NCBI GenBank assembly: GCA_020891255.1
Contig: BQFW01000008.1
Coordinates: forward strand, 744,001 to 808,000
Reading direction: 5' to 3'
DNA length: 64,000 nucleotides
DNA from: Entomortierella parvispora E1425
Lineage: Eukaryota; Fungi; Mortierellomycota
Under the pieces are notes generated by a model. The model ran no database searches and was not told the DNA's origin. It saw only the letters and a list, made by a program, of their open reading frames with translations. The translations under genes were made by a program, and so were the position numbers. This document shows, one piece after another, positions 9,815 to 57,300 of the stretch; the first letter of the stretch is position 1, and each line of letters starts with the position of its first letter.

Positions 9815-11759
9815 TTACTTGCTCTCCTCAACGACAGAGACCTCGGTGATCTCTGTGGTGACAGAGGCAGGCACAGCATCCTCAATGGCCTCCTTGACCT
9901 CTGAGGCCATGACGGGTCTGACGGGCAAGAACCAGGCACAGATACAGCAGATCAGAGTGATAGCAAACGTGATCCACTGAACAATCTTCCAGCCGTGCAT
10001 GAACGAGTTCAAGTACTGGGCATCGATACCGCCTCCAAAGATGAACAATTCTTGGACGGCATCTGGGGGCATGCCAGAAATGATGACCTTGAAGCAGATG
10101 ACAATAGCAATCATCTGGGACAACATCGTGAACATGATACGAAGCGACGAAGATGAAGACCGCTGCTGAGGCAAAATGCAGAGCATCGAGATCGAGGCAG
10201 CGGGAGAAGAGTACAGACCCCATCCAAGACCGTCAATGAGCAACAATAAGGAAATGATCCAGGTGTTGGTCTCGGGCTTGATGATGATGGGCATCAACAT
10301 TGTGCCCACTGACGCCACTCCAAGTCCAATGAAGCACAGGTAACGGAATCCGATTGTGTCAGCCAATTTTCCAGCGGGCATACCGGCAAGCATGATACCG
10401 AGACCGAAGGGGATCAAGAGAATACCGGCCATGAGGGGATCTTTCTTGTAAGGACCCTGGAAGAAGAAGATGAACGAGAACGTCAAGTTGGTACGGGCGA
10501 CACCTCCAGCCAATCCTCCCAAAACGACGGTGTTGTTGAAGACCCAGTTCGTGAACAGGCGGAAATCCATGAAGGGGGCTGTGACGGCGTTAAAGCGCTT
10601 GCCTCCACGGACATAGGTCTCTTGAACAATAAAGGCGATGAAAAGCACACCGAAAGCAACACCCATGCCAACCAAAGAGCTGGTCTCGGAAACCTTGCCG
10701 TTAGGGAACAAAGCACTGACAACAACAACAAAGAGGAGGGCGATGCTGGTAGTCAATGTGATAAATCCGGTGTAATCAAAAGTCTTGACCAACTTGTTGA
10801 AGGACGCGTACTGGACGTGAGGGAAGATGGTATCGTGGCAGAAACAGAAGCCAGCAATAGTTCCAATAGCGCCAAAGGGCAAGTTGAAGAAGAAGACCCA
10901 TTTCCAGCTGGCCTTGACAGTGGCACCTCCGATGACGGGTCCCAAGATTGTACCGGCGGCGAAAGCAATGTTGATGATTCCACTGGCAAGTCCGACCTGG
11001 TTATAAGGGTAAAACTTGTCGGCGACAATGGCAAAGCAGTTGGAGAACAAAAGGGCTCCTCCAAGACCCTGAATCACACGGAAAGCCAGGAGATCGTAAC
11101 CGTTGTACTTGGCTTGTGATAGACCACAAAGAAGAGATCCAATGGTGAAGACCAAGAAACCGATATTGAACATGATGCAACTAAAGAGAAATGAGTGGAG
11201 ATATGAGCAACCTGGAGCAACATTTTCCCGAAGGGTTGTAGATCGAAGCGATTACGACACTCACCGCATGCCACGGAGACCGGCATCGCCGATGAATCCC
11301 AAAAGAGGGACGGTAGCGGTAATGGCCAAGGTGTAGGTCAAGAGAACCCAAATGATGGTGGCAAAGTTGATCTAATCGTGTCCACATGAAATGAAACGTG
11401 GGTGAGTTCCAAGAGAGTTCTTTGTTGCTAAACACAGATAAACAGAGCTCAAATTCATCCTCGATTTTTACATTGAGGTTCTGCATCAGGTCAGGAAGAG
11501 CAACAATCAAGGCGGAACCCTGGAGGGAAACAAAGAGGGCACCGAGCGTAGCGGTCGCGAGGACGATCCACCGTCTTGATGGAGGCTCTTGGTTAGTTTT
11601 GCGAGCCTTGGACATCTCGATGTCGAGCTCGGCCTGTTCCATGGTTTCGTGCTCCATCTCATGACGCAGATTGTCTGCAATGGTATCAGAAACGTTGGTG
11701 ACCGAGCCTGAGTTTTGAGACTCGGCTTTGCCCTCGATATATTCTTGCTTATCAGTCAT
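9815..11759 (-). CDS. MFS drug:H+ antiporter-2 (EmrB/QacA-like) transporter, 586 aa, 3 exons
   Basis: Exons 11759-11472, 11371-11265, 11180-9815. Many hydrophobic segments; DHA2-type motifs IVALPDLMQNL, FRVIQGLGGALL, GPVIGG..WKWVFFFNLPFG, GKLADTIG. Confidence 0.9.
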
Positions 11760-14700
11760 AGCGGTGGATATATAAGGGTGGATGGTGGGTGGTGGGTGGT
11801 GGGTGGTGGGTGGATGGAGGATGATCGAAAGGTGAGTGAGCACGAAAAGTAACAAAAAACTAGAGTACAACAATGAAATGAAAAAAATGCAAGCAATGAA
11901 CAGGAAGGATGAGGGAGGAGGGACAGGAGGAGGAGGTGGAGCGAAAAGCGGTGGAGAAAGAAAAGAGGTAAACTGGGGGTTCAGGGCGGCAGGGGTGAGC
12001 TTTTATATTCATTTACCCAAGGATTAGAAAGCAAGTAGGGTGAACCGCCAGATCCCAGCTATAAACAGAGTTGCCACTCAACTTGATGTTCTTCTTTTAC
12101 TCAGCAGTAGACTACCACACACATGCCGACAGGCGCTTTGAAAATGGCGAGCACATCGTGGCAAGAAAGAGGGCGGGGCTGCTGCATCTTTGCCAGTCGA
12201 TCAAATTAGTCAATCAAGTCAGTCGATGCTGGCAGTGCTTGAAATGGGCATGGCCCTGAGAGCCACCACCTTGTTTTCAATTGAAAAAAAGATCGAAACA
12301 ATAGAAGTCAGGGCAGAGCGGCTATTAGTTCTACCCGGCAATCCTTTTTTCCAGCGAAGCAAGCACCCACAGTCTGCGCTGTTGGGGTGGAAGTCCAGGC
12401 GACAAGATTGCACCCCTTTCAATCGAGAGAAGGGGAACCAAAAAAAGAAAGCGACTCAATAGGGGCGCAGACACTCGTCCGCTGGTTGAAACTGTATCCG
12501 ACTTTCACTTCCCGCACCAACCTTAAAACTTTATGAATCTCACCATCCCACTTTTGTTTGGGAGCTGCAGTCCGTTGCTACTGCTTATGTCCTTTTAGCA
12601 CTCCATCAGAGAAATGACCTTTGCGTTCCTACTTGGGTCACGGCCCTCTTCCCCTGACCCTCTCCTCTCTCCCTCCATTTTCACTCCGTTCCTTCTTCCT
12701 CTCTCTCTCTCCCTCTCTCTCGCTTGCCCTGATCGCTTTCATCTCTGACGACAATAGAATAGCGTGTTGTGGTTGGGTAGGGGTCACCTATGACTAGAGC
12801 AGAGACAGGGCAGAAGGGGTGCATGGATTGATGGCAGACCATCTAAAAACGACTGCTGCAGCGGGCCGCGCCGAATGAAGCGCCCTGTCCAAAAAGTCTG
12901 TTTGTATGTGAGTGTGCCTGTGTGCCTGGGTGTGTTGTACTTCGATCGATTGAGAGTGAGTGTCCGACGAACCTTTGGGCAAGGTACCACAGGGCCAATG
13001 CACAGTTTGCCCAGTCGCCACTGTGCATGTTCTTTGCTGCTTTGCTTCTGTTGCGCATTTTGCGCCGTATCAAAGATTTCTTTTTGTAAAATTCTTCATG
13101 ACAACAATGACAGAGATGACGGATGGAGGACGAGTGTTTCTGCCTGGGTGAAGAAATCTAGCGCAGCTACAACCGTCATCTTTGTATCTTGGGAGTGGAT
13201 TTGATCGAGCAGATCTGCCCCTTTTGTCTCCTGAGTTTTTGACAAAATAAAATTTCTCCTTCAGGGAATATGTTGTGCCGTGCGGTTGATTTGCAACCAG
13301 AGCGGCAGAACTGAGGCATGTACCTCATTTTTTTCACTGACAAATCCTCCTCCTCCTCGAATTCCACCTGTATCATCAGGTGTGTTACTTTCAAGTCCAA
13401 TCGTCCCCATTTGTCTTTTCACTGGTCTCACGAGATATCGAGTTCTTTCCGCAGACCTGGGGTTGGTCAATTGAGCAGGGATGAAGAAATCTTTTCCTTT
13501 GCTAACTGGGCTGGACAACATATTCATGACACACATTACACCAATACTTTTGTTGTTTTTTGAGCTGCTCAATTGCAGTGCATCACTGCTGAACGTGCAT
13601 GTTTGGCCACATCATTCTGATTGATTTTTTTATGTACATGTACATGCACATACAGCCCTCTTTTTTTATTCTTTGGAGGAGGACCGATGGTACACCCCCC
13701 AGTTGAGGTTACAAGATGGTCCCACACGTTTACTCCTCGGAACAGATGTGGTCCAGGGGCATGCGAATCGGACATTTTCGATCACGACTGTGGTGCTTTT
13801 GCCCTACCAAGGATTTATGATGATCCCTAGCAGAGTGCAAAAGAAGAAGGGGCACTCATCTTCCCTGGCCCTACCCTCAACACTGCCCCTGACCTTCTCC
13901 CTCTCCCCTGTCCGTAGACGTGTTGGTTTTCCCGGTAAAAAAACGGGACTATAACGTGCCCTGACAAAAGGGACACAACATTTCGATAAACTTGTGTCAA
14001 ACGCAAATGCTAACAAGCATTTTCAAAGAATCTTCGGATAGACTCTTGCATACGAACAGGGCAGAGAGCAAAAGGCATGGGTGCAGCTGGTTTTTGTTCA
14101 AAAAAAAAAAAAAAAACATTCCAGCGGGCGGGCAGCAGCGGACGCCTTTTGGTTTTGTTCTCTGAAGTTGCGTTTCTGAGGTAGATTTGTTGGAACATAA
14201 ACATCGACCATAAGCGATTAAGAGCACCACACCAGTGATAGCTCGGAAATGAGTAACGTACCGGTACCGTACAGTAGACTATTATATGTCGTAGCCTTGT
14301 ACCATCTGAGGAGAACAAGGGAAGATGGAGAAAGAAGAGAGGCAGGGGCTCATTTTTAGGTTCACGTTTCTTCGGATCCTTTTGAAGGCCATCTTCTACC
14401 TTCGGTCCGTTCACTGATCGATCTCTTGTCACCCACTCAGGCTCTGTCCCGGAATCCAGAGCTCCGCTCGACCCGATTGCTTTCCTCCAGCTTTTGAAGA
14501 TCAGACTCCAATGACAGCTGCTGGAGAGATTGAGCTGCGTGGTTTTACATTTGTGGGTTGTGGCCCCACGTCCCGCCCCACTGCCTTGGACTTCGGACAG
14601 TCGTGGAGATAGTCCCTCCAGTCAGATCAAGCCAAGGAACCTGTCATCCCTCACTACCAAGTACAGCCTTACTCCATTCCTGCTCTCTCTGCTTATCCAA

Positions 14701-14841
14701 GAACGTCTCCAAAGTGTGTGTTGGGCGCAATTGGTGTGACAAAGGAAACACCTCGCAAAATGGGCCCAATATTCGGTGGCAGCCCTGCTCTGCAATTGAT
14801 CGGCCGCCATCAAAACAAAACGGCCAGAAATAAAGAACAAA

Positions 14842-14870
14842 CGCCACCAAGCGCCACCAAGCGCCACCAA
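14842..14870. repeat. Tandem (CGCCACCAAG) x3 upstream of the Cys-rich gene
   Basis: Directly visible: cgccaccaag cgccaccaag cgccaccaa, 170-200 bp upstream of ATG 15040. Confidence 0.85.
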
Positions 14871-15039
14871 ATTGACAAATCACGTTGTTCTCCCGATCAT
14901 TCCACGTGCCGCCGATCACTTAAGGGTCCAACGGCACGAAAAGCCCCTGCTTCGCAGTTCGGACTTTTTTCCACCATGCATCTTTGTTCTTTAACCTTTC
15001 ATCTAATCTCCATTTCCCTCTTCTCCCTTCAATTTCAAA

Positions 15040-15503
15040 ATGTGCTACGCTGTCAAGTGCAACAAGTGCGGCAAGACTGTAAGACGCCTACCCTCTATCT
15101 CCAATCCCTTTTTGGCCGAGACGATGCCGATACACACGATTTTTTTTACTGAGAAAATCTATCTAACCAAAGCGTCTGCTGCCATGATGCCTTGATCGAT
15201 CTCACGACACTACACCTTCATCCTTCTCTAGACCTGGGCTGGCTGCGGCATGGTAAGACCTCTCTCCCCTACGTTTTCTTCCATGATCTGATTACACCCA
15301 ATGTTTTTTGGTGTGTGTGCTTTTATAAACTCAAGCCAATAACACACTCCTTTTTCTTCACTGAAAAACAGCATGTCGAATCGGTCATGAAGGATGTCCC
15401 CAAGAGCCAGCAGTGCCAGTGCCCCCGTGAGCAAGGTTCTTGCATCGTTTCCAACCGTCCTGAGTTCGATAATACCTCTGCTCGTGAAGATCCCATTTGC
15501 TGA
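15040..15503 (+). CDS. Small Cys-rich putative metal-binding protein, ~63 aa, 3 exons including a 21-nt micro-exon
   Basis: Exons 15040-15078, 15232-15252, 15372-15503, all phase 0 with GTAAG donors. Product MCYAVKCNKCGKTTWAGCGMHVESVMKDVPKSQQCQCPREQGSCIVSNRPEFDNTSAREDPIC. ATG context TCAAAATG. The 3' end is less certain. Confidence 0.75.
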
Positions 15504-16993
15504 TACCTGGACGTTTCTACATCCCTGCCACTCTTTTTTTTTTTTTTTTTTTTTTTTCACCATTTTCCTTCCCACGTTGCTCTTTGGACACAAAAACTTC
15601 AATGCCTCGTTTCCTGTTGCCTCACCGTCAATTCCTCTCTCGACACAGCTACCCCCGCGTCAGCCCCCAAGGCTTCTGCTGAATAGGGTCCAGTCATTGA
15701 GCTGAGCAACTGAACTCACGATGGCACTCTCGCAGTCATTTCGCACCGAACAACAAAAACAAACTTTAGTTCTGAAGTGGAAAAACCACGATACTTTGGG
15801 CCTCAGTGATCAAATTCAAAAATAAAGTGCTTTCATTTTTGAACAGAACAAAGTGCGGTCATGAGTGGGGAGGGAAGTGCAAACTCAGCCCAGTGGTGGC
15901 ACCATTTGGCACCATCCGCAGGTTGAAAGTTTTTAAAGACATCGTTCGAATCTGGTGCAGGAGAGAAAGAGAGAGAAAGAGAGAGAAAAACCTAGGACTT
16001 TGGACAAGAACAAAAAAAAAAAAAAGACGTTCAGTCGCGTGTTAGGACTATCGGTCGGACCGAATAGGTGTCGAGCTGCCAAAAGGTATCCAGGCTCCTT
16101 GTGTCGGTTGATCTCCTGAGTCTGGGACAACTCCGTGACAAATTTGGGACCCGAAAGAGCCTAGTTGATTATTTGTAACGACACGTCTTTGACAATGGTC
16201 TAGTGCTCATCAGATTGAGAGACGGAGGAGAGAGAGAGCGAGTGAGTGAGTGAGAGAGAGAGAAAACAAACACAGAGATGAAGAACTAAAAGTGAGGGTA
16301 CCAGTGATGAAGAGCCAAAAAGGGGTCAGGAAAGAGTGACAGAAAGCTGGGACTCCTTGTTTGCCACCAGAAGGATGCTATCGGTCATTGTGCGTGCGTT
16401 CAAGTCTTTTCTGTACTCGGCAGTATCCTACCTTTTTCGGCAAGGTAACCCCCCCCCCCATCTCATTAACAATTTCTTTCTTGTCGTTTTTTTAGCAGCA
16501 CCTCTTCTGCATCCACAGAAAGGATGACGATCCTCCACTCCACTTTTTCTTTAGATGCACTCGTTTTGTTCAGATTCTTTTACGGTGGAGCTGACATACA
16601 TGCAATGGCAGCAACGCCCGCATCATACTGACTAAACGGGAACGGAAAGATCGTTCCAAGCATGAATATTCCTACACCAATATCTACTTTCATGATTTAA
16701 AAAAAAAGCAGGAGGCAAGTCTTGTGGCGTCAAGTAGGTCATCTAGTCGAAACACGAGTGGTCTAATGGTCCAACATCCTTTTTTTTTTCGTCGACGGTT
16801 AGGAGCCCACGACGCCGTCTTTTTCTATAGTGAGCGACATGAAGGTATCATTTCTGCCCTTGATATACGTTCATCTACCAATGTGGATTGCCAGGAGACT
16901 GCCAGACCTCCTTGCCCTCCCCTCACCCCCTCATTTCACATTGTTAGCACACAAGACGCGTCGTACTTCCCCTTTCCATTTTGGAGACAGAGG

Positions 16994-17002
16994 TATATAA
17001 AA
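16994..17002 (+). promoter_or_regulatory. TATA box of the secreted repeat-protein gene
   Basis: TATATAAAA about 100 bp upstream of ATG 17104, followed by a pyrimidine-rich leader. Confidence 0.6.
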
Positions 17003-17103
17003 GGACTCATCCAATCCATTCCTTGCCTGCTTGTTTTTCTTCCTATTCTGTTGGTTCTCACCTCTCTCCTTCACTCTAAAACAACAGATAACATAACCAC
17101 ACC

Positions 17104-17910
17104 ATGAGGATCAGCACTGCCATCGCACTCACTCTCTCCGCCTTTGCGGTTTCAACTCACGCGGCTCCACTTCCCTTGTTGGAGGGCGTCTCTCAGGCAC
17201 TCGGTACGGTTACCAGCCAGGCAGCTCCCGAGGCCGCCACAACTGCTGGTCCCGTTTATGAGAAGCGTGGTTTGACTGACCCACTCACTCAGGCAATCGA
17301 CATGCTTACTGGCGCTGCCGGCCAGGCAGCTCCCGAGGCCGCCACAACTGCTGGTCCCGTTTATGAGAAGCGTGGTTTGACTGACCCACTCACTCAGGCA
17401 ATCGACATGCTTACTGGCGCTGCCGGCCAGGCAGCTCCCGAGGCCGCCACAACTGCTGGTCCCGTTTATGAGAAGCGTGGTTTGACTGACCCACTCACTC
17501 AGGCAATCGACATGCTTACTGGCGCTGCCGGCCAGGCAGCTCCCGAGGCCGCCACAACTGCTGGTCCCGTTTATGAGAAGCGTGGTTTGACTGACCCACT
17601 CACTCAGGCAATTGACATGCTTACTGGCGCTGCCGGCCAGGCAGCTCCCGAGGCCGCCACAAATGCTGGTCCCGTTTATGAGAAGCGTAATGATCTCCTC
17701 GCCCCCGTCGCTAACCTCGCCCCCGTCGCTAATGTGCTCCATACTCTGCCCGTTCAAGCTGAGACTACCCAAACTTCTGGACCCGCCACCGAGGCCACGG
17801 ATTTTGAACCCACTTTCGAGAAGCGTGACAATCTCCTTGCCCCCGTCGCTAACCTCGCCCCCGTCGCTAATGTGCTCCATACTCTGCCCGTTCAAGCTCA
17901 GACATCCTAA
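17104..17910 (+). CDS. Secreted Kex2-processed repeat protein (KEP-type peptide precursor), 268 aa, intronless
   Basis: Signal-peptide-like MRISTAIALTLSAFAVSTHA, then APLP, then six EKR sites delimiting 4 x GLTDPLTQAIDMLTGAAGQAAPEAATTAGPVYEKR and 2 x (N/D)(D/N)LLAPVANLAPVANVLHTLPVQA units. Confidence 0.9.
   Translation: MRISTAIALTLSAFAVSTHAAPLPLLEGVSQALGTVTSQAAPEAATTAGPVYEKRGLTDPLTQAIDMLTGAAGQAAPEAATTAGPVYEKRGLTDPLTQAIDMLTGAAGQAAPEAATTAGPVYEKRGLTDPLTQAIDMLTGAAGQAAPEAATTAGPVYEKRGLTDPLTQAIDMLTGAAGQAAPEAATNAGPVYEKRNDLLAPVANLAPVANVLHTLPVQAETTQTSGPATEATDFEPTFEKRDNLLAPVANLAPVANVLHTLPVQAQTS
17269..17688 (+). repeat. Coding tandem repeat, 4 x 105 bp (type A units)
   Basis: Units start at 17269, 17374, 17479, 17584. 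Units 1-3 are identical; unit 4 differs at 2 nt (ATC>ATT synonymous, ACT>AAT Thr>Asn). The preceding ~50 bp is a partial copy. Confidence 0.97.
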
Positions 17911-17935
17911 ACTCCGGGAGCTGCCACCCGAGGCC
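17689..17935 (+). repeat. Coding repeat, type B units (138 bp plus a truncated copy extending into the 3' UTR)
   Basis: Units start at 17689 and 17827; each has an internal 18-bp duplication (LAPVAN x2). Similarity of copy 2 continues past the TAA at 17908-17910. Confidence 0.9.
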
Positions 17936-18453
17936 CTTGACGCACCTGACACTGCGTTCTAAAAGCGTAGCGCTGTTTCCTTCATACCATGTTTGTTCAT
18001 TCCCTGCACGAGTATCTTAAAGCCTTCAAGAACCAATTTGACATGTTCGCCCTCCCCCCATTGTCTATCCTAATAGCATTTTAATAAAGCCCCTGTAGGC
18101 ATTGATTGCCTTCAAATGAAACCATTCTCCTTGTCTTTTTGGTCTTCCTATCCTGTGAAGCGTCTCGCGTCCTATGGCAAATTGTTTTGACCATGGCAGA
18201 AAACATGTCTTCTCTCAATTTGAAAAAAAAAGCAAAGGTTTTATGTATCTGTACAGTGCCTCAAAACTACGAAAGGTGTTGTTCCCTCATCGTTGAGGCA
18301 TTTTCACTTTCCTCCGGATCCGAATATTATCGATAGTTGGAAAAAAAAAAAAATAAGGAAAAAAAAAAAGAATGCTTTTCGACTCTGCTGGATGTGTTAA
18401 TTCCCAGGCTCATCTCCACCCCTTGATCTCCTCCAATTGAAAAATGAAAAGTT

Positions 18454-18582
18454 CTACCAACCCTTTTTCAGGTTGATCTTGGGCAAGGTTACTGTGCTAC
18501 GTCTGTTCTCCATCCACCTTTCATCCTCATCTTGTAGTGCGCTGGACAGATCCTTGGTCACCCAACTGATGGAGAGTAAACG

Positions 18583-54126: not shown

Positions 54127-54208
54127 CTTGTTTATTTGTGTGTGATCTCTCATTCGTGTCTTCTTTTTTATTTTTTATTTTTGTAATTGCCCATAGATCT
54201 CGCCAACG

Positions 54209-54262
54209 ATGGATCAGCAGCAACAGTACCAGGCGTACCTGCAGCAGCAGAGGCAGCAGCAG

Positions 54263-54306
<44 letters not shown>

Positions 54307-57300
54307 GCAACACCACCAACAGCAGCAGCAGTATCAACAATATCAACAGCACCAACAGCAACAGCAACAGCAGCACCAGCTTCAGCAATTGCACATGCAA
54401 CAACAGCATGCAAGACAACAGCAACAGCACCAACAACATCCACAGCATCCACAACATGCACCATCTCGGTATGGTCACATGCCAATGTCCATTCAAATGC
54501 CCACCAATACCACGAGTCAACAACAGCAACAACAACAACACCCCATGTCTTCCCCCTATCCCACACTCAGCTCTCCCACAGCTGCCGCAACAGTGGGTCA
54601 AGGTGGATTTGTATCCATGTCTGTTACAACAGGGACACCCGCCACGCCACCAATCCAGTCTAGTATGTCGGGGTTGATGTCTGCTGCAGCGATCCCACCT
54701 ACTGCATCCACACCTTTGTCCGCAAGTGCATCTTCTACAGTGGCTCCTCCACTTCCTTCACCAGGAGCAGCACCAACTGGAGCAGTAGGAGGCCCGGGAG
54801 GAGCAGGAAGGGTCAACTTGGGCCTAAGCGCGACATCTCCAACTACTCCAGTGGCACCGCAGGCTTTCAAGACACCCACTGCAGTCTTGTTGCAGCAACA
54901 GAGACAAAAACAGTTGCAATTACAACAACAGCTCCAGCTCCAGCAGCAGCAGCAGTTGCAAAAGCAACAACAACAGCAACAGCAACAGCAGCAACAGCAG
55001 CAACAACTTCAGCAACAAAGCCAAGTAAAACCAGAAAAGGTCGACACTACAGTGCCTGTCAGTCGGATCAATACCTCAGTAACGTCTCCCATTGCTATAA
55101 CGACATCGTCCGCAACTCCTACCGCCATCCCTTCTCCTACCAGTCTCAAAATGCCTTTGTCCCCTCAAGAAGGAAAGCCAACATCCTCCCAGCTGATGCG
55201 ACAGCTGGAGGAGCAAAGGAAGCAGAGAGAACAGGAGCGAAAAGCCGCAGCTGAAGCCGAGGCAGCAGCCGAGGCTGAAAAGGCCAAAGAGAAAGAGCGA
55301 CAAGAAAGATTGCAGGCTGAACAAAAGGAGATCGAGGAAAGGCAAAGGCGGCAACTTGAAGAAGAAAAGAAAAAGGCGGCAGAGGAGACTCGAAATCAGG
55401 AACCAAAGAATGCGCCGGAAGAATCAATCCCGGGACAAATGCAGCCAAGGAGTGCAGACAAGGAAGAAGGCAGGGATCCAGGGGAGGCGAACGAAGGCCA
55501 GCCATCCCAGCCCACTCCTCTTCCACATCAGAGTCCTCAGCAACAACAGGGGCAGCAATCCGCGCCACCTCGACCCGTTGAGTCTCCTTCTGGACAATCC
55601 TATTCACAGCAATCGCGTCCTCAATCTTCATCTCAGAGTCAACCTTCTGGAGTATCGCCTCAATCGCAAGATCGCGCTCGGCCACAAGATCCATCTTCAC
55701 AGCAGCAATCGCCATCACACGACACACCGGGACCCTATAATCAACAGTCACCATTGCAATCCCGACAAGGACCTCAATACCCATCATCACAACAATATCA
55801 GCGTCCTTCCCTGCAAGCAGCGTATTCCCAAAAACAGAGCCCTCATTCAACATATCAGCAGTCGTCGCCTGCGAGCAATGCTTCATCCACTTTTAACCAG
55901 CCCGGCCCAGCCACTGGAACTCATCACTCACCATCAGGCGCAGCAGGAACATCTTCCTCAATGGGACCCCCAGCTGATCGAGCGCCAGTCCAAGGACCCT
56001 CAACAGTGACAGCGACCGACTCAATTTCTGATAGCCCATCATCAAAAAAGGAGGGATCATTAGACAAGAGTAATGATACGAAAAAGGAGCCGCCTTCTGG
56101 TAGATCAGCACCGTCAGAGCCCATTGGACCTAGTCAGATATTCAAGGCGACATACTCGGGTGTTCCTGTATATGAAATGATTTGCAAAGGAGTTGCAGTG
56201 ATGAGGCGTCGTTCGGATTCTTATTTGAACGCGACCCAAATCCTAAAGGTGGCCGAATTTGACAAGCCGCAACGGACCCGAATCCTGGAGAGGGAGGTCC
56301 AGAGAGGCTTGCATGTAAAAGTCCAAGGTGGATACGGAAAGTACCAAGGTAAAACAGGAGCACATGTTTTTTTACATTATGGATGTATATTCGTTATACG
56401 TTCTTTTGAATTTTGGGAATTAATATCTTGAATTGTCAACAGGAACGTGGGTGCCATTCGAGCGCGGTCTTCAGCTGTGTCAGGAGTACAGTGTCGTCGA
56501 CCTACTCCAGCCTATTCTTGAGTATGAGGCAACCTCAAGCAGTCCTCCCCTGGCACCAAAGCACATTACAGCAGCGTCTAATCGACCTCGGAAACCACGG
56601 GAGCCCAGAGTGCCACGCCCTCTTAGCGGTGGCGCTGCAGGGACACCAAAATTGAAAAAGCTCAAGCTCAAAGGCTCTGACTCACATATCCAACCTAGAC
56701 CTGCGTTGGGAGTTGTTGACGAGAACGGTCAGCCAGTCGAGGGAGACACTGATGTAGCTGATGAGCAGGTTGATGAGGCTGATGTGGACATGACAGCTTC
56801 TGACATGGACGAGTTGGCAGGTACGTTATATGCCTTTCTTTTGTTGTTTGCGCCATGGGACTTGAAGACCAAATATTGACTTTTTGCCTTCCATTAATGT
56901 CAAGTAGAAGACAGCGACGTCAGCATGGATGAGACCACAAGTATTTCTCAGCCAAGTCGCACCCATACCGAATCACCCTCCGTTTCCCGCTTGAACTCGC
57001 CTTCAGACCTGTCGGAGGAGGAGGCCTATTCGTCCGCCAATTCCAACGTTTCCCCAGCGACCTCCGGCTCCAAATCCACTCGGAACAAATCCCCTCGCGC
57101 TTTACGGAAGAGAGTCGCTCGACCAGGGGACGAGTTGTTTTTGGGTAATGAGGGCCGTCGAAAGAAACGTGGTCGTAGAGCTACTGACGACCAGGATGTG
57201 GAAATGGCAGAGCCCGATGTCGAGGATGGCACTAGAGAGAGCAACAGAGGTTCGACATCTCCGACACGCGATGGATCCGATCAGGAAGACCGTAAATCAA

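Follow-up and report, generated by a model that had tools for sequence, protein, structure and literature searches.

A candidate Kex2-processed repeat protein precursor in the soil fungus Entomortierella parvispora E1425

Introduction

The stretch of DNA considered here (64,000 nucleotides, positions 744,001 to 808,000 of the forward strand of contig BQFW01000008.1, hereafter the window) contains an open reading frame (ORF) of 268 codons, most of which is made of tandem repeats separated by Lys-Arg (KR) dipeptides. The locus raises a simple question: is the encoded protein a precursor which is cut at each KR to deliver a series of small secreted peptides, or is it something else, such as an intact wall protein, a folded repeat protein, or a repeat array without function? 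The original prediction was in favor of a Kex2-processed precursor of amphipathic peptides, with surface-active, amyloid-like, signalling or antimicrobial roles put forward as hypotheses, in an early-diverging fungus. The origin of the DNA bears out this last point: the BQFW01 accession series corresponds to Entomortierella parvispora E1425, a soil fungus whose Mycoavidus endosymbiont was removed before sequencing (PMC8759367), and which belongs to the phylum Mortierellomycota. According to an exact-protein look-up, the protein is encoded once, in the NCBI record BQFW01000008.1 (assembly GCA_020891255.1), where the gene is called.

The evidence described below indicates that this is probably a genuine, single-exon gene of E. 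parvispora coding for a Kex2-processed repeat protein (KEP).

Organization of the predicted precursor

The ORF starts with a predicted signal peptide (Table 1), with hydropathy windows of about 2.0 across residues 3–16. It continues with APLP and with a series of units, six of which end in (Y/F)EKR, as had been claimed. The order of the units, a leader peptide followed by four copies of type A (33 aa after trimming) and two type-B peptides, also agrees with the original prediction. The four type-A units occupy residues 56–195. Tandem Repeats Finder detects a 105-nt period at positions 17216–17688 (4.5 copies, 99% matches), in agreement with a second repeat search, and a 138-nt period at positions 17680–17935 (1.8 copies, 88% matches).

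Le Marquer et al. (2019) have defined KEPs in silico, as proteins which have a signal peptide, no membrane segment and repeated motifs, and which give at least four fragments, each of at least 2 aa, after cleavage at KR or RR (PMC6339444). All these features are found in the E. parvispora protein. The signal peptide is assigned by rules. There is no membrane segment and no hydrophobic C-terminus: the highest 19-residue Kyte–Doolittle mean past residue 21 is 1.24, in a segment that contains four prolines. Five A-type and two B-type units lie between the KR sites, and cutting after every KR gives seven fragments of 27–55 aa, namely a 55-aa piece (the signal peptide and the first unit), four pieces of 35 aa, one of 46 aa and one of 27 aa. 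The KEP architecture that had been claimed thus agrees with the published definition.

Basic residues and predicted peptides

The precursor contains only 6 Lys and 7 Arg, and neither Cys, Trp nor an N-X-S/T sequon. All the lysines and six of the seven arginines belong to the six KR dipeptides, the exception being R2, and none of 200,000 permutations of the non-redundant unit set reproduced this confinement. Since the lysines and almost all the arginines are confined to the six KR sites, the most likely outcome is the release of seven small acidic peptides.

We infer that secretion, cleavage and trimming occur as follows. The pre-pro-protein would enter the endoplasmic reticulum, and signal peptidase would cut after residue 20. 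In the late Golgi, kexin would cut after each of the six KR, which are predicted to lie in linkers that are disordered, acidic and rich in Ala, Pro, Thr and Glu, the residue at P4 being aromatic. A Kex1-type carboxypeptidase would remove the C-terminal Lys and Arg, and a Ste13-type dipeptidyl aminopeptidase may strip AP-LP, from the first peptide only. The expected products are seven linear, Cys-free, acidic peptides: one diverged A-type peptide (29–33 aa), four A-type peptides (33 aa, about 3.2 kDa) and two B-type peptides (44 and 27 aa). The likely core would be an amphipathic helix for the A-type peptides and, for the B-type ones, a hydrophobic segment punctuated by Pro. The predicted average masses of the products are about 3202.5, 3215.5, 2832.1 (3210.5 if AP-LP is kept), 4592.0 and 2767.1 Da. 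Of 250 fungal catalogues, only 15 lack one or more of KEX1, KEX2 and STE13; the absences of KEX2 that are named concern Microsporidia and a few species of Dikarya.

After trimming by Kex1, the predicted net charge of the peptides is about −1 to −6. The argument that the acidity of the peptides speaks against a cationic pore-former therefore stands. The predicted signature of Ste13 (X-Pro or X-Ala dipeptides) has to be qualified: it is present after the signal peptide, in AP-LP, and only there, the dipeptides which follow the internal KR sites being GL, ND and DN.

The single-sequence AlphaFold2 model has a mean predicted local distance difference test score (pLDDT) of 44.9 and a predicted template modelling score (pTM) of 0.17. 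It shows one helix of 14–15 residues per A unit (positions 5–18, local pLDDT up to about 69), and the Ala/Pro/Thr/Glu tails that bear the KR are modelled as coil, with pLDDT<50. The model of the ESM Atlas is likewise unconfident (pLDDT 0.44). The hydrophobic moment of the type-A helix is above that of 99% of shuffles (p = 0.009), and that of the type-B N-half is unremarkable (p = 0.22). Of the two classes of amphipathic peptides that had been proposed, type A is therefore retained as amphipathic and type B is not.

The absence of a predicted fold is also what would be expected if the protein were secreted but remained mostly intact, as a disordered and maybe O-mannosylated component of the wall or matrix, in which the KR are incidental or only partly used. 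The Thr/Pro/Ala-rich tails look like O-glycosylated linkers, and the pLDDT is low throughout. However, the restriction of basic residues to KR dipeptides at the junctions of units is hard to explain without processing, and EKR is kept in two unrelated types of tails. Besides, no Cys and no GPI-like (glycosylphosphatidylinositol) C-terminus was found in the 268-aa protein, which also lacks the Ser/Thr-rich block typical of wall proteins. We consider an intact wall protein to be rather unlikely.

Divergence and decay of the units

The units A1, A2 and A3 are 100% identical in DNA. A4 differs by two nucleotides; one change is synonymous, and the other replaces T with N in the protein. The 51 nt at the end of the first unit match the tails of the A units exactly, and nearly every codon of its N-half has diverged, with retention of the pattern L..x(V/L)(S/T)QA(L/I)x x(V/L)T. 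What is kept in this N-half is Q-A and the hydrophobic positions of the A helix (V/L, L/I and V/L).

The six invariant (Y/F)EKR sites of the original prediction are all present, but as evidence they represent only about two independent observations, one for the A-type tail and one for the B-type tail. Indeed, the A array is either young or homogenised, so that its five YEKR sites, which are identical, amount to a single observation. The tail of B1 is otherwise unlike that of the A units, yet it ends in FEKR, and EKR is thus common to two dissimilar types of tails. This FEKR, the diverged N-half of the first unit and the continuation of the B repeat beyond the stop provide support that is independent of the array.

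The N-half of B2 differs from that of B1 by four changes in 72 nt, one of which is synonymous; in the protein, ND is swapped to DN. The stop codon of B2 arose by a CAA>TAA change, and indels of +1 and +3 lie further along the tail. Downstream of the stop, TTC-TAA-AAG-CGT, which ends at position 17968, is a relic of the FEKR codons of B1, and the 138-nt B repeat runs on past the stop. Since the repeat and the FEKR relic persist past the stop, B2 must once have had a full tail and a cleavage site. The tail of B2 decayed whereas its N-half stayed almost unchanged. This pattern fits the idea, without proving it, that the N-halves are likely the functional cores and that the tails are spacers which present the cleavage site.

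Homologue searches and the resemblance to Sel1 repeats

Word-indexed protein searches with the whole protein, the B region or the first 90 aa returned no homologue, and a metagenome scan also returned none. The protein itself is missing from the collection of 15 billion sequences, so that the absence of paralogues from the same genome is uninformative.

An exhaustive phmmer search gave 370 matches with E<1e-3 (best E 6.6e-32). Among the best 150 of the 370, the identity to the A array is 26–36%, and nearly all carry Sel1-type motifs. In the PDB, the best match is BurrH, a TALE-like protein (E 6e-6), followed by Sel1 proteins. These results led us to consider that the type-A array, instead of being a peptide precursor, could fold into an alpha-solenoid built of helical hairpins of the Sel1-like or TALE-like kind. 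The period of 35 aa is close to that of Sel1-like (PF08238) repeats (36 aa) and BurrH/TALE-like repeats (33–34 aa), several consensus Ala, Gly and Tyr positions align, and four copies of the unit outscore composition-matched shuffles.

The very significant E-values were distrusted, however, because aligning identical repeats on repeats violates the independence on which E-values are based. One A unit alone reaches 26 bits (E ~0.5), versus about 130 bits for four copies. Against a Sel1 profile made of 567 Sel1 units taken from the phmmer matches themselves, and thus biased in favor of the query, the score of the A unit is 2.8 bits, which is equal to the best shuffle, and the total for four units is 13.5 bits, versus 13.3 bits for the best of 500 composition-matched shuffles. 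The protein is not reported by the Pfam model of Sel1 (PF08238; gathering score 30.7 bits) at E<=10. The taxonomy of the top matches is scattered (a chytrid, a trichomonad, a Bacteroidota bacterium and metagenomes), with no relatives of the host. Finally, a single helix per unit, instead of two, is seen in the AlphaFold and ESMFold models, with no hairpin and no global fold, and Pro and Gly-Pro occupy the place where helix A is expected.

Homology to Sel1 proteins or BurrH was rejected on the basis of the single-unit, shuffle and profile controls and of the scattered taxonomy, and we regard a solenoid as highly improbable. We conclude that the likeness to Sel1 is not homology, but a generic similarity between a 35-mer rich in Ala and Gly and a repeat consensus of 36 residues. 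It illustrates that a query made of identical repeats can reach E 1e-32 against an unrelated repeat family, and that single-unit and shuffle controls are needed.

Gene structure and expression

The coding sequence is GC-rich and contains no 5′ splice consensus GTRNGT. On these grounds, a reading of the 105-nt repeat as an array of introns separated by single-codon exons was rejected. The start codon is in a Kozak-like context (A at −3), and no ATG lies between the TATATAA element and this codon. Over the non-redundant 5′ part of the gene, codon scoring ranks the sense frame first (0.20, compared to −0.06 for the best antisense frame). The NCBI annotation which carries the gene model was built with RNA-seq-derived hints. 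The sampled 31-mers of the gene are found in two sequencing runs from the source sample, at shares of 0.71 and 0.40.

An antisense ORF of 266 aa (window 17152–17952, minus strand) covers the same repeats; its start is a GTG in the bacterial-code ORF list. It has no ATG, no signal peptide and no promoter element; rather than a second gene, it seems to be a side effect of a tandem repeat that contains no stop.

Several observations weigh against the conclusion that the gene encodes a KEP. The signal peptide was assigned by rules only (hydropathy and the −3/−1 reading). The A units owe their near-identity to recent duplication or gene conversion and not to selection, and no homologue was found from which constraint between species could be read. 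In the B region, the codon score does not distinguish the sense from the antisense frames. No RNA runs are listed for the locus. In nine further runs that carry this species label, the share of the sampled 31-mers of the gene is 0.00, a value for which no control gene was compared; the gene may be strain-specific, young or fast-evolving, or the label may span divergent isolates.

Part of the above would be explained if the gene were a young, strain-specific orphan, weakly expressed or silent and without selected function, in other words an expanding minisatellite that is open on both strands. The empty homologue searches, the lack of listed RNA runs, the 0.00 share in the runs of the same species label, the open antisense frame and the decaying tail of B2 all go in this direction. 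On the contrary, the strict confinement of Lys and Arg to the ends of the units is unexpected for a neutral array, and in the first unit, a copy that is old and diverged, the hydrophobic pattern is kept. In addition, the ATG of the locus is in Kozak context and opens a signal peptide, the frame is flanked by a TATA box and a poly(A) signal, and the hints used in the annotation derive from RNA-seq. We therefore see a silent orphan as improbable, and a genuine KEP gene as the probable interpretation.

Table 1. Features of the KEP-type gene, with positions in the window.
Feature	Position	Strand	Basis
TATA-box-like element TATATAA, ~110 nt 5′ of ATG	16994-17000	+	regex on sequence
Single-exon coding sequence (CDS), KEP-type precursor, 268 aa + TAA stop	17104-17910	+	uninterrupted ORF from ATG; gene call on NCBI record
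Predicted signal peptide, residues 1-20: R2, ~14-residue hydrophobic core, T at −3, A at −1 before A21	17104-17163	+	hydropathy, −3/−1 rule
First diverged A-type unit, residues 21-55; AP-LP start, YEKR end	17164-17268	+	DNA alignment to A units
Type-A unit A1, 105 nt/35 aa, YEKR end	17269-17373	+	Tandem Repeats Finder, alignment
Type-A unit A2, 105 nt/35 aa, YEKR end	17374-17478	+	Tandem Repeats Finder, alignment
Type-A unit A3, 105 nt/35 aa, YEKR end	17479-17583	+	Tandem Repeats Finder, alignment
Type-A unit A4, 105 nt/35 aa, YEKR end	17584-17688	+	Tandem Repeats Finder, alignment
Type-B unit B1, 46 aa, Pro-punctuated hydrophobic N-half (LAPVAN x2), acidic T/P/E-rich tail, FEKR	17689-17826	+	translation
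Type-B unit B2, 27 aa, cut off by stop	17827-17907	+	alignment to B1
Decayed B2-tail remnant, now 3′ untranslated region	17908-17968	+	alignment of B1 vs B2 + downstream sequence
AATAAA poly(A)-signal-like hexamer, ~175 nt past stop	18083-18088	+	sequence motif scan

Genomic context

The neighboring genes that are called code for a zf-CCCH/RING protein, a major facilitator superfamily (MFS) transporter, a WD40 protein and a 627-aa protein of no assigned kind. This context bears on whether the gene could encode a dikaritin-type precursor, that is, the precursor of a peptide (RiPP), made on ribosomes and modified after translation, whose core is cyclised via the Tyr beside the KR site. The KEP architecture and the presence of one Tyr near the cleavage site in each A unit are in line with this possibility. 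However, no DUF3328/UstYa-like ORF (with paired HxxHC) was found in the 64-kb window, and the genes called in the flanking DNA, over about 10 kb on each side, include no DUF3328. Since such a gene was not found nearby, a dikaritin precursor has a very low probability. To our knowledge, no dikaritins are known outside Dikarya. The units are also long (35–46 aa) compared to typical dikaritin repeats, which have 8–14 aa (PMC7329392).

Between the MFS transporter gene and the KEP-type gene, about 5.3 kb (window 11760–17100) are devoid of called genes, a long stretch given that the genome has 38.7 Mb and 11,641 genes. No Pfam match was obtained for the ORFs of 124–144 aa present in this gap, and an Rfam scan of window positions 11700–18500 returned no family. 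The gap contains homopolymer runs, T24 at positions 15534–15557 and A16 at positions 14101–14116.

Further downstream, window positions 54197–56428 (plus strand) are stop-free over 744 codons and give a match to KilA-N that is below threshold (E 2e-4; 21.6 bits for a cut-off of 23.8). A weak tblastn similarity to the type-A array is seen at window positions 54217–54438 (E 0.1); it is probably compositional.

Comparison with known systems

Two surveys have catalogued fungal KEPs. The first lists 1193 KEPs, of which 77 have two types of motifs and 11 come from Mortierella elongata, and notes longer KEP peptides (the 25–50 aa class) for Mucoromycota (PMC6339444). In the second, Umemura (2020) reported 7878 KEPs, including 357 in 39 strains of Mucoromycota and 8 in Mortierella verticillata; 2560 of the 7878 are stand-alone, without homologue (PMC7329392). 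The E. parvispora protein is similar to catalogued KEPs in that it combines two types of motifs in one precursor, belongs to the 25–50 aa peptide class and stands alone without homologue. The genome of E1425 was published after both surveys, and cleavage is predicted, as is the case for nearly all catalogued KEPs. The motifs GPVYE(KR), LAPVAN and QAIDML were absent from the supplementary tables of both surveys, and AAPEAA from those of the first, in which alone it was looked for; these tables may be incomplete.

The statement that such peptides are little studied in early-diverging fungi was therefore overstated, since KEPs of Mucoromycota and Mortierella have already been catalogued and KEPs with two motifs are known (PMC6339444, PMC7329392). 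The E. parvispora gene is an orphan addition to this catalogued class, and by itself it establishes no new principle. In Mortierellomycota, KEPs have been counted (8–11 per genome), and we found no report of an experimental study of one of them. If the peptides are made, they would be one more concrete KEP product in this phylum, whose masses can be predicted and which could be sought by peptidomics in a culturable strain, JCM 39028, with a curable bacterial endosymbiont. Linear KEP peptides have been confirmed by peptidomics in agaricomycetes, where kep knockouts have no phenotype (PMC9769878); this calls for caution against expecting an easy functional read-out.

The precursor of the ascomycete alpha-factor (MF_alpha_N/MF_alpha) has the same pre-pro layout, KR sites, tandem identical peptides, and X-Pro dipeptides after the signal peptide. 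The resemblance to alpha-factor detected with a language model is weak, however (score 0.70, under the noise level of the tool), and the protein has no Pfam match to MF_alpha_N or MF_alpha at E<=10. Unlike in alpha-factor precursors, X-Ala and X-Pro are absent after the internal KR, and the predicted peptides are acidic and have 27–44 aa, versus 9–24 aa for alpha-factor. The identification as an alpha-factor was rejected on these grounds (no Pfam match, no Ste13 signature after KR, longer and acidic peptides). We know of no peptide hormone or pheromone in Mortierellomycota.

Ece1 from Candida albicans is also a polypeptide with KR-separated segments, from which Kex2 and Kex1 produce several peptides, one of which is an amphipathic helix. 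The peptides of Ece1 differ from one another, and candidalysin is a cationic peptide which lyses membranes. In contrast, the E1425 peptides are repeated and have a net charge of −1 to −6. A candidalysin-like identity was rejected because they are anionic.

Rep1 from Ustilago maydis, rather than alpha-factor, would be the nearest working analogue, on the basis of size, of amphipathicity and of the fact that no Ste13 signature follows KR. Rep1 is a protein of 652 aa with a signal peptide and 12 repeats, which gives ten peptides of 34–53 aa and an end product of 229 aa; these peptides have no Ste13 signature, are located in the cell wall and form amphipathic amyloid on aerial hyphae (PMC3133707). 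The two proteins share a signal peptide, KEX2-cut repeats (predicted ones in the E1425 protein), a similar size of the peptides (27–44 aa in the E1425 protein), KR sites that are not followed by a Ste13 signature, amphipathic peptides, and more than one type of product per precursor. No similarity to the sequence of Rep1 was seen among the best 150 of the 370 phmmer matches, and no direct alignment to Rep1 was made. The amyloid, the location in the wall and the role in aerial hyphae have been demonstrated for Rep1; in the E1425 protein, the Pro residues found every 6–7 residues in type B disfavor amyloid.

A speculative possibility, to which we give little weight, is that the peptides form a convergent, repellent-like coat, which would lower the surface tension and cover aerial hyphae and sporangiophores, or else that they act as diffusible peptide signals. 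In this lineage, canonical hydrophobins are scarce or missing, with 0 in the one Mortierellales proteome that was surveyed (bioRxiv 10.1101/2022.08.19.504535). If the coat proposal were true, peptides of 27–44 aa derived from a KEP would do in a fungus of the Mortierellomycota the job that hydrophobins and Rep1 repellents do in Dikarya.

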